A DNA stretch of 64,000 bases from Octopus sinensis (lineage: Eukaryota): contig NC_043022.1 in the NCBI RefSeq assembly GCF_006345805.1, positions 186,001-250,000 on the forward strand. Direction: 5' to 3'. The notes beneath the pieces were generated by a model. The model was not told where the DNA came from, searched no databases, and was given only the letters and a program-made list of their open reading frames with translations. The first letter of the stretch is position 1; the number at the start of each line of letters is the position of its first letter. Shown here one piece after another: positions 5,607 to 49,368 of the stretch. A program made the translations under genes and the position numbers.

Positions 5607-5671
5607 ATGAGGATCCGTTACCTCGGTTTCTTTGCCTTGCTGTTTTTTTCCTCGATGAAACTCTCTACACA
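5607..5671 (+). CDS. Exon 1 (putative signal peptide) of secreted tandem calcium-binding EGF protein
   Basis: ACAACGATGA start context; MRIRYLGFFALLFFSSMKLST has basic n-region and hydrophobic h-region; ends CA|GTAAGT (phase 2), matching the phase-2 acceptors at 12430 and 16057. Confidence 0.6.
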
Positions 5672-6690
5672 GTAAGTACACCTGCATATATATATATATA
5701 TATATACATATATATATATATATATATATCTATATATATATATATATATAATTATATATATATATATATATATTAATATATATATATATATATATATAAT
5801 ATGAGAGATGTTTTTATATATAATGAACGTGAAATACAGGAAGGGACGAACACGGAACACAGACAAATCATTCGAAGCCTTCAATCTTCAGTCAGACACA
5901 AGAAACCGAATCATCATAGCAAATTTCGGCTGTTCAATTCTGATATTTGCTCCAACTCGGCCAGCCCCAAGAAAAAAAACTAAGCTGTAAGCATTAGATT
6001 CTTGGTAGAAGACAGGAATGTGAACGCACAAGACGGATGTGAATACAAGAGACGAAAACGAAATTGAAAACAGTAATGAATAAACAAAATATATATAACG
6101 GTGGTTGTCATACGACTTAGACCAAATGAGACAAAACAACAACAAACATAGCAGCTGGCGTAGAAATAATTACCGTTTCGGTAGCGGGGACACATGTTGG
6201 TCGAGATACGAAGGCCAACAGAATGGTTGAAGAAGCAGCAGGTCGCAGGAGAGAGAGAAAGATATATATATATATATATATATATGTATATATATGTATA
6301 CATATATGTATACTTATATATATATATATATATATATATATAAAGTTAATCCAAACAAGAACACAAAAATCACAACAAGGCGAGGACGTGGAGCAAATAT
6401 AGTATTATTGGACTCTCAGGAAAGAAGGGAAGAAGGAGGCTTAACGTTTCGAGCGGAGCTCTTCGTCGGAAACATAGGAGAAGGAAAATCCAGAGAGGAA
6501 AAAAAGTCGCCAACGGTACACACGAGGTCACATATATATATATATATATATATTATATATATATATATATATATGTGTGTGTGTGTGTGTGTGTGTGGGT
6601 GTGTTTGTGTGTGTGTGTTTGTGTGTGTGTGTGTGTGTGTGTGTGTGTATGTTGTGTCTGTGTGTGTGTGTATGTAAGTATATACATATA

Positions 6691-7168
6691 GGCGCAGGAA
6701 TGGCTGTGTGGTAAGTAGCTTGCTAACCAACCACATGGTCCCGGGTTCAGTCCCACTGCGTGGCATCTTGGGCAAGTGTCTTCTGCTGTAGCCCCGGGCC
6801 GACCAATGCCTTGTGAGTGGATTTGGTAGACGGAAACTGAAAGAAGCCTGCAGTATATATGTATATATACATATATATATGTATATTATATATATATGTA
6901 TATATATATATAATATATATATATATATATATATATATACATATATACGACGGACGGGCTTTTGTGTCTGTGTTTGTCCCCCCTAGCATTGCTTGACAAC
7001 CGATGCTGGTGTGTTTACGTCTCCGTCACTTAGCGGTTCGGCAAAAAAGACCGATAGAATAAATACTGGGCTTACAAAGAATAAGTCCCGGGGTCAAGTT
7101 GCTCGACTAAAGGCGGTGCTCCAGCATGGCCGCAGTCAAATGACTGAAACAAGTAAAAGAGTAAAGAG
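6691..7168 (+). mobile_element. tRNA-derived SINE family A (full length)
   Basis: Head GGCGCAGGAATGGCTGTGTGG (A box)...GGTTCAGTCCC (B box), central CTTGGGCAAG, internal (TA/TG)n, tail CCAGCATGGCCGCAGTCAAATGACTGAAAC. Other copies ~7602-7972(+), 9040-9365(+), 12901-13291(-), 20691-21760(+), 46332-46723(-), 50100-50385(-), 55426-55826(+), 63125-63506(-). Confidence 0.85.
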
Positions 7169-46045: not shown

Positions 46046-46145
46046 NNNNNNNNNNNNNNNNNNNNNNNNNNNNNNNNNNNNNNNNNNNNNNNNNNNNNNN
46101 NNNNNNNNNNNNNNNNNNNNNNNNNNNNNNNNNNNNNNNNNNNNN
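46046..46145. other. Assembly gap (100 N)
   Basis: Run of exactly 100 N in the intron between exons 10 and 11. Confidence 0.99.
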
Positions 46146-49108
46146 GGGAAGCTTTATGAAAATAAACAAAGACGAAAGCAGGTGGAAAACTAACAAACAA
46201 TTGTATTAGTATGGCGCTCAGGAATAGAAATAAAACAAGTCTTTTACGTTTCGAGCCTACGCTCTTTAACAGAAAGATACACAGAAAAGAAACACGGAGA
46301 GAAACAAGGAGAGAAAAAAAATATACTGTTTACTCTTTTACTTGTTTCAGTCATTTGACTGCGTCCATGCTGGAGCACCGCCTTTAGTCGAGCAAATCGA
46401 CCCCAGTAAGCCCAGTACTTATTCTATCGGTCTCTTTTGCCGAACCGCTAAGTGACGGGGACGTAAACACACCAGCATCGGTTGTCAAGCAATGCTAGGG
46501 GGACAAACACAGACACACAAACATACACGCACACATACATATGCATATATATATAGATATATACGACAGGCTTCTTTCAGTTTCCGTCTACCAAATCCAC
46601 TCACAAGGCTTTGGTCGGCCCGAGGCTATAGCAGAAGACACTTGCCCAAGATGCCACCGAAGTGGACTGAACCGGAACCATGTGGTTGTTAGCAAGCTAC
46701 TACCACACAGCCACTCCTGCGCCTATATATATATATATATATATATATATATATATATATAATATATAATATATATATATATATATATCTGATATATATA
46801 TATATATATTATATACATAATATATATATACATATATATATATATATTATATTATATATATACTATATATATATATATATATATATATATATATATTCAA
46901 AATGTGACCTCGTGTGTACCGTTAGCGATTTTTTTCCTCTGTCTTCCCTTCTCTGGATCTTTCCTTCTCCTATGTTTCCGACTATATTTGTTCCACGTCC
47001 TCGCGTTGTTGTGTTTTTTGTACTTTCTTGTTTGGATTAACTATATATATATATATTATATATATATATATATCTATATATATATATATATATATTATAC
47101 ATTACATATATACATAATATAATATATATATATTAAAATAATATATATATATATATGTATATGTATATATGCATATGTGTGTGTTGTGTGTGTGTGTATG
47201 AGACCAATCGACATAGTCGGAAACCACTTGAATTTTAAGAAATGTATCTGGTCCGAAATAATCCTCTATTTGTATAATGAACTTGTCCGTTATATCTAGC
47301 ATTATATGATATTGTTCATAGGGCAATATTTTACCGATGCTTCGTCAAGTGCCCTTCACTTCTCTATGGAAAATGTAAAATCAAACAACAGGGTACTAGG
47401 CTGTTATTTCTAACAATGCGTTAGACCTTAGTGAGTTAAATGTGGAAATATAATCGCAGTATTGTAAAGTTGCCTCCCTTAGATGCTGCATGAAACGCAG
47501 TGTCATAAGGTATAATGAGGTGGGAATATTTATAGCACATCGTAGAAAATGCAAAGCAAAATTTCTTGTCAAAATTTGCCTTCCACAATTTCAGATCGAA
47601 TAAAATATTTAACAGTAAATTACTGAGTTTGATCTACATCTGTAGCAGACCTGATTCTCGAGAGAGAACCTCTTAAGTACAGCTTAAGTATTTGTAAGTA
47701 GCCTCCCTTAGAGATAGTAAGAAAGGTGGAGTCACAGAATGATACAAACGAGGTGTCATAATTTTTTTTGAACGTCGGAGAAAAAGCTTACCGATTTTTC
47801 CTTCGTCGTAAAGAAGGCGGCGAGCTAGCAGAGTGGTTAGCACGCCGGACGAAATGCGTAGCCGTATTTCGTCTGCCGACACGTTCTGAGTTCAAATTCC
47901 GCCGAGGTTGATTTTGCCTTTCATCCTTTCGGGGTCGATAAATTAAGTACCAGTTATGCGCTGGGGTCGCTATAATCGTCTTAATCCGTTTGTCTGTCCT
48001 TGTTTGTCCCCTCTGTATTTAGCCCCTAGTGGGTAATAAAGAAACAGATATATCCTTCGTCGTAACATTGTGAGTTAATATTTCTTCGAGGCCGAGTCTT
48101 TCATCGTTCAGGATCAATGAAATAAGAAAAATTGAGGACTGAGGCCTGTGTAATCGATTACTCCACCCCTGAAACCTGTTTGCCCTGTGTCAAAATAAAA
48201 AAAAGAATACATAATGAAGTGACAGGGAGAGAAAGAGAGAGAGAGAGAGAGAGAGAAGTAAATGCTTGTACGTATGTTTTTCATATTTCTTGAAGTTCTT
48301 TTAAAGAGAATTCCCATTTTATTTCATGTGGTTGAGTTGGTTTGCTGGCAGAGCTGTCGAGGCCCACACCCAAACGCGAGCATTTATCGGTCTAAAGAAT
48401 CTCAGAATGATTTGAAATGTCTTACAAATCGTCACAGAGGTGTAAATAGATTGGATTTAAAGAATTCACGTTAACAGTTCCTGGGCATTGCACATAATAA
48501 GTTGCCTTTGTTACTCGCCAGGTACTCAATCCATTTTGCTATAGGTATCTTGAAATGGCCCTAGCTGCAAGTCTCCTCATGTATCTGTTTGAAGTATCTT
48601 CACTAAAATTTTTGTGGAACTGGGATAGGTGTTGATAAGGCGGCGAGCTGGCAGAAACGTTAGCACGCCGGGCGAAATGCGTAGTCGTATTTCGTCTGCC
48701 GACACGTTCTGAGTTCAAATTCCGCCGAGGTCGACTTTGCCTTTCATCCTTTCGGGGTCGATTAAATAAGTACCAGTTACGCACTGGGGTCGATATAATC
48801 GACTTCATCCGTTTGTCTGTCCTTGTTTGTCTCGTCTGTGTTTAGCCCCTTGTGGGTAGTATAGAAATAGGTATTTCGTCTGCCGTTACGTTCTGAGTTC
48901 AAATTCCGCCGAGGTCGACTTTGCCTTTCATCCTTACGGGGCTGATTAAATAAGTACTAGTTACGCACTGGGGTCGATATAATCGACTTAATCCGTTTGT
49001 CTGTCCTTTTTTGTCCCCTCTGTGTTTAGCCCCTTGTGGGTAGTAAAGAAATATATATTGTTCCTTTTTATCATTACTTATGTTTGTTTATTTCCTCCTT
49101 ATTTTCAG

Positions 49109-49368
49109 ACATCAACGAATGTAGGTGCAACAATGGTGGATGCCCTTTCCCTTACAGATGCGTTAACAAACCCGGGCACCACTACTGTGATTGTCCCTTC
49201 GGGTTTGGAGTTAGAGGGAACATGTGTCACCTTTTGATACCTCAAAAGCAACTGAACTTCACTCTCCCCAATAACCCAAAAGTCTTACCAAGAATGAAGC
49301 CGCAATTACATACCACAACTGTGATACCACCTAAAAAATCAATCAGAAGCGAGGCAGGATGGTCATAA
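49109..49368 (+). CDS. Exon 11 (terminal): 7-Cys EGF 8 plus 46-aa basic Pro/Thr tail to stop
   Basis: ATTTTCAG| acceptor, phase 1, DINECRCNNGGCPFPYRC...GNMC HLLIPQ...AGWS TAA; no transmembrane segment; AATAAA downstream. Confidence 0.9.

Follow-up and report, generated by a model that had tools for sequence, protein, structure and literature searches.

We describe here gene B, a putative ten-exon gene for a small protein built largely of calcium-binding epidermal growth factor (cbEGF) repeats, located in a 64,000-nucleotide stretch of the Octopus sinensis genome (CM016884.1:186001-250000, + strand; assembly GCA_006345805.1). The whole of this stretch is called the window below, and positions are counted from its first letter. 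With a probability of roughly 65%, we read gene B as an intact protein-coding gene whose product is a secreted cbEGF rod protein, and as one of at least three clustered paralogs, the others being genes A and C.

The gene runs along the + strand from 5607 to 49368, in a window of 36.8% GC that is dense in microsatellites and repeats resembling short interspersed elements (SINE-like), and its exons join in frame to 1224 nt, or 407 amino acids (aa), with no internal stop codon. Every internal boundary has the form AG/../GT (a slash marks the cut here and below) with a pyrimidine tract at the acceptors, so that 18 of 18 splice sites are canonical, and the exon phases run 2, then 2-1, then seven times 1-1, then 1 to the stop. 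An earlier note made from these letters alone had proposed this GT/AG chain, and its coordinates, sites and phases were all re-derived here; it erred in placing exons 7 and 10 outside the list of open reading frames (ORFs), which holds 32303-32722 and 49036-49368 and thereby covers both. The features are given below, compared with the Octopus vulgaris locus OX597839.1:29839293-29940494 and the O. vulgaris protein model CAI9741405.1.

Exon 1, 5607-5671, + strand: ATG and 21 signal-peptide-like codons (MRIRYLGFFALLFFSSMKLST); ends in phase 2 with donor ACA/GTAAGT.
Exon 2, 16057-16118, + strand: cysteine-bearing stub ELSTKNPCCAGFVGSVDGCR; phase 2 to 1; identical in O. vulgaris and used in CAI9741405.1.
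Exon 3, 19962-20081, + strand: cbEGF 1, phase 1-1; identical in O. vulgaris.
Exon 4, 21835-21954, + strand: cbEGF 2, phase 1-1; used in CAI9741405.1.
Exon 5, 24466-24585, + strand: cbEGF 3, phase 1-1; identical in O. vulgaris.
Exon 6, 30468-30587, + strand: cbEGF 4, phase 1-1; one synonymous difference in O. vulgaris.
Exon 7, 32493-32612, + strand: cbEGF 5, phase 1-1; used in CAI9741405.1; His in place of the aromatic residue of the PROSITE signature.
Exon 8, 40950-41069, + strand: cbEGF 6, phase 1-1; without ortholog in the O. vulgaris locus.
Exon 9, 44636-44752, + strand: cbEGF 7, 39 residues, phase 1-1; without ortholog in the O. vulgaris locus.
Exon 10, 49109-49368, + strand: atypical terminal EGF with seven Cys (DINECRCNNGGCPFPYRC...), a 46-residue basic tail and a TAA stop.
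Two AATAAA signals, 49745-49765, + strand: 377 and 392 nt past the stop.

In Pfam, the joined protein matched FXa_inhibition (E 1e-51) and EGF_CA (PF07645, E 3.5e-46, in seven stretches), with cbEGF families ranging from E 1e-51 to 1e-36. When a profile of the eight EGFs was run against all six frames of the window, it recovered these eight, all on the + strand, together with a single one on the - strand, every one at E<1e-14, and no further match below E 0.1; the sequenced introns therefore contain no other recognisable EGF exon. Such an in-frame chain of domain-bearing exons is far beyond chance. At the 3' side, the pair of AATAAA signals likely marks the end of gene B, and the same motif block is also present after the stop of gene C. 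At the 5' side, no clear TATA box was found upstream of exon 1, in a region rich in microsatellites.

The encoded protein begins with an n-region holding two Arg, a 12-residue hydrophobic core and, judged by rule, a plausible KLST/Q cleavage site (residues 1-21), which together are probably a cleavable signal peptide that would leave the mature N-terminus at Q22; the mature chain of paralog A also begins with Q. The stub that follows has 20 residues and three Cys and is of the CCxGF type. It leads into seven canonical cbEGF repeats of 39-40 residues, each with six Cys in the spacing 5/12/16/25/27/39. The earlier note had counted eight tandem cbEGFs, and seven of these stand, whereas the eighth, in exon 10, is an atypical terminal EGF with seven Cys that scores 18 bits for EGF_CA, taken alone, where the cut-off is 27. 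Matches to PROSITE PS01187 and to PS00010, the site for Asx hydroxylation, were found in 6/8 repeats. Although the repeats are only ~50% identical to each other, all their six-Cys patterns and Ca-binding residues are kept. The protein closes with the tail (isoelectric point 11.2) and has 52 Cys in total, an even number.

The repeats also carry regularly placed glycosylation motifs. Five of the seven ordinary EGFs have an N-x-T sequon between C5 and C6, always in the same position (residues 77, 117, 157, 237 and 316, in exons 3, 4, 5, 7 and 9), and three gene B repeats have the motif C-N-N-(T/S). The regularity of the sequons suggests that the protein may be heavily N-glycosylated at even spacing. 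No membrane segment was found in the 407-aa model, where the N-terminus is the only hydrophobic 19-mer, and the lack of a membrane anchor reported earlier thus holds for this model. The accompanying proposal of a secreted multi-cbEGF protein without a transmembrane exon gained support from the terminal exon, since the same exon, with its stop, comes last in three paralogs and in a second octopod.

An AlphaFold2 model of the protein, built from an alignment of 30 sequences, reached a mean predicted local distance difference test (pLDDT) score of 83.3. Ten-residue blocks were confident from about residue 31 to residue 360, and residues 1-26 and 369-407 fell below 50, the latter segment being predicted as disordered. 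The stub was modelled as a beta-hairpin resembling the minor sheet of an EGF. With this model, Foldseek matched the EGF arrays of NELL and Notch; taken together with a sequence search of the PDB, the matches were the EGF arrays of NELL, Notch-1, LRP2, LDLR, thrombomodulin and CD97 (LDLR and thrombomodulin from the sequence search).

Comparison with the second species added evidence on constraint. The O. vulgaris locus is collinear with the window up to 36.2 kb, with 1.43% substitutions. Exons 1-7 differ by 4 substitutions in 727 nt, fewer than the locus rate would give (P=0.022), and all their lengths and splice sites are kept. Judged from the sequence, gene B is probably functional.

Gene B has relatives on both sides. 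Paralog A lies upstream on the same chromosome and strand, its stop 6.06 kb before window position 1, and positions 1-3942 of the window are 100% identical to the downstream flank of its O. sinensis gene model, XP_036369522.1. In the databases, paralog A is represented by this truncated model (242 aa, "fibulin-1-like") and by aa 1-285 of O. vulgaris CAI9741405.1. Its layout comprises a signal peptide, a 37-residue acidic spacer, the stub NLKYTRYSTTCTRCCKGWTGVPGRCR (CCKGW), five cbEGFs, the same 7-Cys terminal EGF and the start of a tail. The two genes thus have in common their layout, their intron phases, cbEGF exons of phase 1-1 and the terminal EGF. They differ in that paralog A has five ordinary EGFs, which are Arg/Lys-rich with a short C1-C2 spacing, and gene B has seven of the 'NGGC' type; in that the ordinary EGFs of A and B are ~40-55% identical; and in that paralog A has the acidic spacer and a tail that ends differently. 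The RefSeq model XP_036369522.1 begins at an internal Met (MGRRECN...) inside the first EGF and has none of the signal peptide, spacer and stub that are present in O. vulgaris; by this comparison, paralog A is also mis-annotated in O. sinensis.

At the other end of the window lies part of a further copy, on the opposite strand.

Gene C, terminal exon, 62400-62632, - strand: the same 7-Cys EGF, a tail ending IPPKK and a TAA stop, followed by AATAAA; not part of gene B.
Gene C, end of the last ordinary EGF exon, 63961-64000, - strand: RKGFELFKKRYCV, donor G/GTAAGT, cut by the window edge; matches RKGFELYKKRYCV of paralog A.

From these two exons, gene C appears as a third paralog, gene-A-like and convergent with gene B, with its remainder beyond the window end. 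Its 3' end explains an inverted duplication between 48871-50085 and 62862-62043 (91.6-95.9% identity), which extends from the end of an intron through the terminal exon into the 3' flank. The 384 bp at 49340-49723 are missing from gene C.

The terminal exon behaves differently from the rest of these genes. Among A, B and C, its EGF part shows 0-1 amino-acid changes and a synonymous divergence (dS) of at most 0.045, and this near-identity, set against the divergence of the other EGFs, suggests that the exon was recently duplicated or gene-converted. The same exon is found in another octopod (a genomic Logan contig), with 76% identity over the whole exon and 7/7 Cys kept; the ratio of nonsynonymous to synonymous divergence (dN/dS) for the EGF part is 0.16-0.26, so the terminal exon is under purifying selection. 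The basic tail, which the earlier note had called novel, is not unique to gene B, being common to paralog C and this other octopod. A GT also lies within the C-R-C codons at the start of the terminal EGF (TGTAG/GTGC, window 49119-49126), and the same motif is present in gene A, at about 41240 of the O. vulgaris locus, in gene C and in another octopod.

A broader view of these copies can be offered only tentatively, and is more likely wrong than right. Genes A, B and C might form an octopod-restricted family of small secreted cbEGF proteins with a vestigial EMI stub, in which gene conversion would keep the shared 7-Cys terminal EGF and basic tail near-identical; such a family might have a lineage-specific extracellular job, and neighbouring members might be joined by read-through splicing from the terminal-exon donor. 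If this were true, a role in, for example, egg-case, mucus or sucker matrix would be possible.

Several points weigh against reading gene B as an intact, independent gene with this exon chain. The divergence between O. sinensis and O. vulgaris is only ~1.4%, and the evidence of constraint is therefore weak. Taken by itself, exon 1 gives no sign of conservation (1 difference in 65 nt, P=0.76), and its chance test, in which first-order Markov simulations gave at least one candidate with a signal-peptide-like start and a donor in 4.7% of cases, used thresholds picked after the fact. CAI9741405.1, the only annotated model touching these exons, reaches exon 2 through 12430-12633 and paralog A, not through 5607-5671, and it omits exons 3, 5 and 6. 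Furthermore, exon 10 stands on the other side of a scaffold gap from exons 1-9, and the O. vulgaris locus compared has no orthologs of exons 8-10. These points bear on the alternatives taken up below.

The 5' end concerns the join of exons 1 and 2. Exon 1 is single copy, keeps its length, ATG and donor in O. vulgaris, and is, over the 16 kb that precede exon 2, the sole ORF passing the combined test for a signal-peptide-like start and a donor. Paralogy with A supports the join best, because exon 1 of paralog A likewise ends in phase 2 (AA/GTAAGT) and its exon 2 begins in phase 2 and ends in phase 1, as in gene B, and because its stub NLKYTRYSTTCTRCCKGWTGVPGRCR is homologous to gene B exon 2 in position and phase. 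An alternative first exon at 9690-9745 (MPLSILAAVVPVLQLAAL) was rejected, as it lies within a multi-copy SINE-like repeat. There is, however, a competing or optional exon between the two.

Candidate exon e1b, 12430-12633, + strand: 204 nt, phase 2 to 2; strong acceptor tttgtctttcag, donor GAG/GTAAGC.

The earlier join of signal exon to stub is supported by the same phases and layout in paralog A, but the O. vulgaris model uses this other 5' exon, which is in part what the earlier note had named as telling against it. Exon e1b encodes aa 286-354 of CAI9741405.1 with 100% identity, and it is open in the frame that links exon 2 to exon 1 or, alternatively, to the terminal exon of paralog A. Because it is also in frame between exons 1 and 2, the 5' end given above for gene B is provisional.

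It is possible, though well short of even odds, that gene B has a different 5' structure, in which e1b is coding and stands between exons 1 and 2, either constitutively or as a cassette exon; the product would then have 475 aa, and the mature protein would gain a 68-residue spacer with one Cys before the stub. Such a structure agrees with the phases of e1b, its opening in exactly the required frame and its strong splice sites, and with the finding that this single-copy exon is unchanged between the species (0 differences in 204 nt, against 3 in 301 nt of flank) and coding in the O. vulgaris annotation. Paralog A, too, has a spacer between signal peptide and stub. Yet the e1b peptide has no Pfam match and no known domain and shows no similarity to the paralog A spacer, its inclusion would make the Cys total odd, and the 475-aa form is, like the 407-aa protein, absent from a collection of 15 billion proteins. 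Its open frame is moreover partly a selection effect, since an open frame was a precondition for entry in an annotated coding sequence. The idea that e1b supplies the missing part of an EMI domain was rejected, as it has no EMI match and one Cys only. Exon e1b may be a gene B cassette exon, an artefact of read-through, or both.

The 3' end depends on how the scaffold was joined within intron 9.

Assembly gap, 46046-46145: 100 N in intron 9; of the two contigs that it parts, one carries exons 1-9, the other exon 10 and gene C.

The gap begins 1293 bases past the exon 9 donor and ends 2963 bases before the exon 10 acceptor, so that no codon or reading frame spans it. As a scaffold join, its size is not fixed by the 100 N, and hidden 1-1 exons would cause no frame break because the flanking exon edges are both of phase 1. 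An attempt to bridge it with the O. vulgaris locus failed, as collinearity stops at about window 36.2 kb at a 100-N gap of that assembly's own; the break concerns positions 83521-91202 of the locus, set against window 36.2-61.5 kb. Collinearity resumes there in a satellite of ~3.3 kb, against ~1.9 kb at window 59.5-61.4 kb, and some 23 kb of the window, including exons 8-10, have no counterpart in the O. vulgaris locus compared, which reflects either a structural difference or an incomplete O. vulgaris assembly.

We consider it unlikely that the 3' end is wrong, either through extra EGF exons within the 46046-46145 gap or through a misplaced right-hand contig whose exon 10 is part of another copy. 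Between exon 9 and exon 10, a gap of unspecified length could hide any number of 1-1 exons, the right-hand contig carries the terminal exon twice, in opposite orientations, and O. vulgaris gives no check across the gap. On the other hand, O. vulgaris has a satellite resembling that at window 59.5-61.4 kb, likewise oriented and placed downstream of gene B, which agrees with the order of the scaffold and may count as weak support for it. The minus-strand copy of the terminal exon belongs to gene C, so the plus-strand copy remains for gene B, and whichever way the contig is oriented, a near-identical terminal exon would come after exon 9.

Less likely again is that there is no independent gene B, its exons being alternative 3' exons of paralog A reached through the donor TGTAG/GTGCAA and e1b, with 5607-5671 a chance ORF. 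CAI9741405.1 (459 aa) has precisely this structure: it is a chimera in which aa 1-285 come from gene A and aa 286-354 from e1b, followed by exons 2, 4 and 7 and a 6-codon exon, and it uses the GT in the gene A terminal exon as a donor into the next gene. The O. vulgaris annotation drew in part on Iso-Seq and RNA-seq, but it merged these with protein alignments and ab initio calls (PMC10700109), and CAI9741405.1 is therefore not clean transcript evidence. Such an A-B fusion would leave a broken EGF (DINEC, then a linker), put a second post-signal stub in mid-protein and leave out three intact, conserved EGF exons. Its last, 6-codon exon lies beyond the O. vulgaris assembly gap and was not found in the window. 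By paralogy, moreover, exon 2 is expected after a signal-peptide exon.

That gene B is an unprocessed pseudogene, a duplicate that is silent or decaying while its frames are still open, would fit its lack of a protein model in O. sinensis but is very improbable given ten open exons with 18 canonical splice sites, six-Cys patterns and Ca-binding residues intact despite ~50% identity among the repeats, and exons three times less diverged than the locus overall.

If gene B is an intact gene, as we favour, its significance is mainly one of annotation. The earlier note had called it hidden, and this was borne out: the exact 407-aa protein is absent from the collection of 15 billion proteins, and octopus matches are limited to the truncated paralog A model and the O. 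vulgaris chimera. A homolog search gave mainly fibulin-1, fibrillin and MEGF6 at 34-47% identity, with XP_036369522.1 and CAI9741405.1 as the only octopus matches and no O. sinensis protein covering the gene B exons. Searching the full protein with HMMER against 1.84 billion representatives gave 13,878 matches, of which the best 150 were all giant multi-EGF proteins at 35-51% identity and of no use for finding orthologs. Exons 1 and 2 with part of exon 3, used as a query, returned no candidate, a negative that is uninformative, since the index is too sparse for short queries and even CAI9741405.1, which holds 21 identical exon 2 residues, was missed. In the literature we found no paper on genes A, B or C, and 'Octopus + fibulin' led only to an unrelated mention in a mucus proteome.

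Being one of at least three neighbouring copies, gene B represents an annotation gap and not a new kind of protein. It has no O. sinensis model in the databases searched, that of paralog A is truncated, and the O. vulgaris model fuses two genes and ends at a gap. With the A and B models missing or garbled, proteomic searches of octopus mucus, egg cases, ink and saliva would miss these proteins. Beyond annotation, the locus offers an example, outside insects, of an EMI domain of which only the closing CCxG(F/W) segment is left, and it shows an exon that is near-identical among otherwise diverged paralogs; neither changes current ideas on EGF proteins.

The window also holds several repeats and a mobile-element remnant. 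A 34-bp minisatellite with 25 copies and 98% matches (28732-29586) and a 398-bp tandem duplication with 2.3 copies (17986-18880) are intronic. A (TGTA)n tract of 313 copies (41200-42446) starts 130 bases past exon 8, and a GT-rich tract of 710 bp (20851-21560) lies immediately upstream of exon 4. Between genes B and C, an ORF on the - strand (52369-52812) weakly resembles the zinc-binding region of reverse transcriptases (PF13966, E 1.8e-4) and is read as a retrotransposon fragment; related copies occur in the introns of paralog A.

The product of gene B would be a small secreted glycoprotein with a mass of ~43 kDa, glycans not counted. In appearance, its 3-Cys CCxGF stub is like the last 14 residues of an EMI domain or like the C-terminal half of an EGF. 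The seven Ca2+-binding EGFs that follow would form a rigid rod, most of them with an N-glycosylation sequon at an equal position, and would be succeeded by the atypical 7-Cys EGF and a disordered basic tail. We infer secretion, Ca2+ binding and a matrix function: like other cbEGF arrays, the protein may be a Ca2+-stiffened extracellular rod that contributes to matrix or adhesion or acts as a scaffold for ligands. Likely sites of covalent or electrostatic attachment are the odd Cys, three of them in the stub and a seventh in the last EGF, and the basic tail.

Among known systems, gene B belongs with the cbEGF arrays, having repeats of six Cys, the PS01187 signature D/N-x-D/N-E/Q-C ... C-x-D/N-x4-F/Y-x-C, the PF07645 match and the fold matches to Notch and NELL. 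'Fibulin-1' is the name that pipelines gave to its paralogs, and fibulin-1 proteins, which are likewise secreted with tandem cbEGFs, were the commonest matches (34-41% identity). True fibulin-1 matches, however, carry the N-terminal anaphylatoxin-like domains PF01821 and the C-terminal fibulin module PF22914, and neither is among the Pfam matches of gene B at E<=0.01. Those matches are of EGF type only, and none of the accessory domains of SCUBE, NELL or matrilin (CUB, TSPN/VWC, VWA/coiled coil) was found. An analogue from octopus is octovafibrin, an egg tether of O. bimaculoides with 29 EGFs, C-type lectin domains at both ends and a Cys spacing of 5/10/16/25/27/36, none of its repeats being Ca-binding by PROSITE (PMC10336842). 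It is also a secreted octopus protein consisting nearly entirely of tandem EGFs, with a structural role that depends on disulfides; gene B, in contrast, has no lectin family in Pfam and its own Cys spacing, and the analogy is functional only.

The earlier note had assigned gene B to an EMI/Nimrod type, and of this assignment only the motif survives. A complete EMI domain, as in EMILIN, MEGF6, EGFL7 and Draper, has ~70 residues and seven Cys (Pfam PF07546), and PF07546 gave no match at E<=10 in the N-termini of gene B, of gene B with e1b, or of paralog A; Ptychodera MEGF6, taken as a control, was matched at 6.3e-5. No further Cys-rich exon was found in intron 1. What is present is a 14-residue C-terminal EMI-like motif, CCxG(Y/F/W)xG..C, right before the EGFs (PCCAGFVGSVDGC in gene B and RCCKGWTGVPGRC in paralog A), which is too short for statistics. 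MEGF6, EGFEM1 and EGFL7 similarly have CCxG(aromatic)xG...C directly before the first EGF, and the NGGC-type cbEGFs of gene B are similar to MEGF6 repeats (43% identity to a Ptychodera MEGF6, with 69% of the query covered), but gene B lacks an EMI domain, with the first ~55 residues and four Cys missing, and has no laminin-type EGFs. The NIM repeat consensus, CxPxCxxxCxNGxCxxPxxCxCxxGY (PMC4073527), was found by regular expression in 0/8 gene B repeats and nowhere else in the protein. Secreted insect Nimrod B proteins (PMC4073527) have a signal peptide, as gene B probably does, and are like it in having a short CCxG(aromatic) motif, an EGF-like array and no membrane anchor; they combine CCxGY with NIM repeats, whereas gene B combines CCAGF, with F for Y, with cbEGFs, and we found no evidence for shared ancestry. 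The layout of gene B is like that of a secreted Nimrod B, or of the N-terminus of MEGF6 without most of its EMI domain, and this is a resemblance, not membership.

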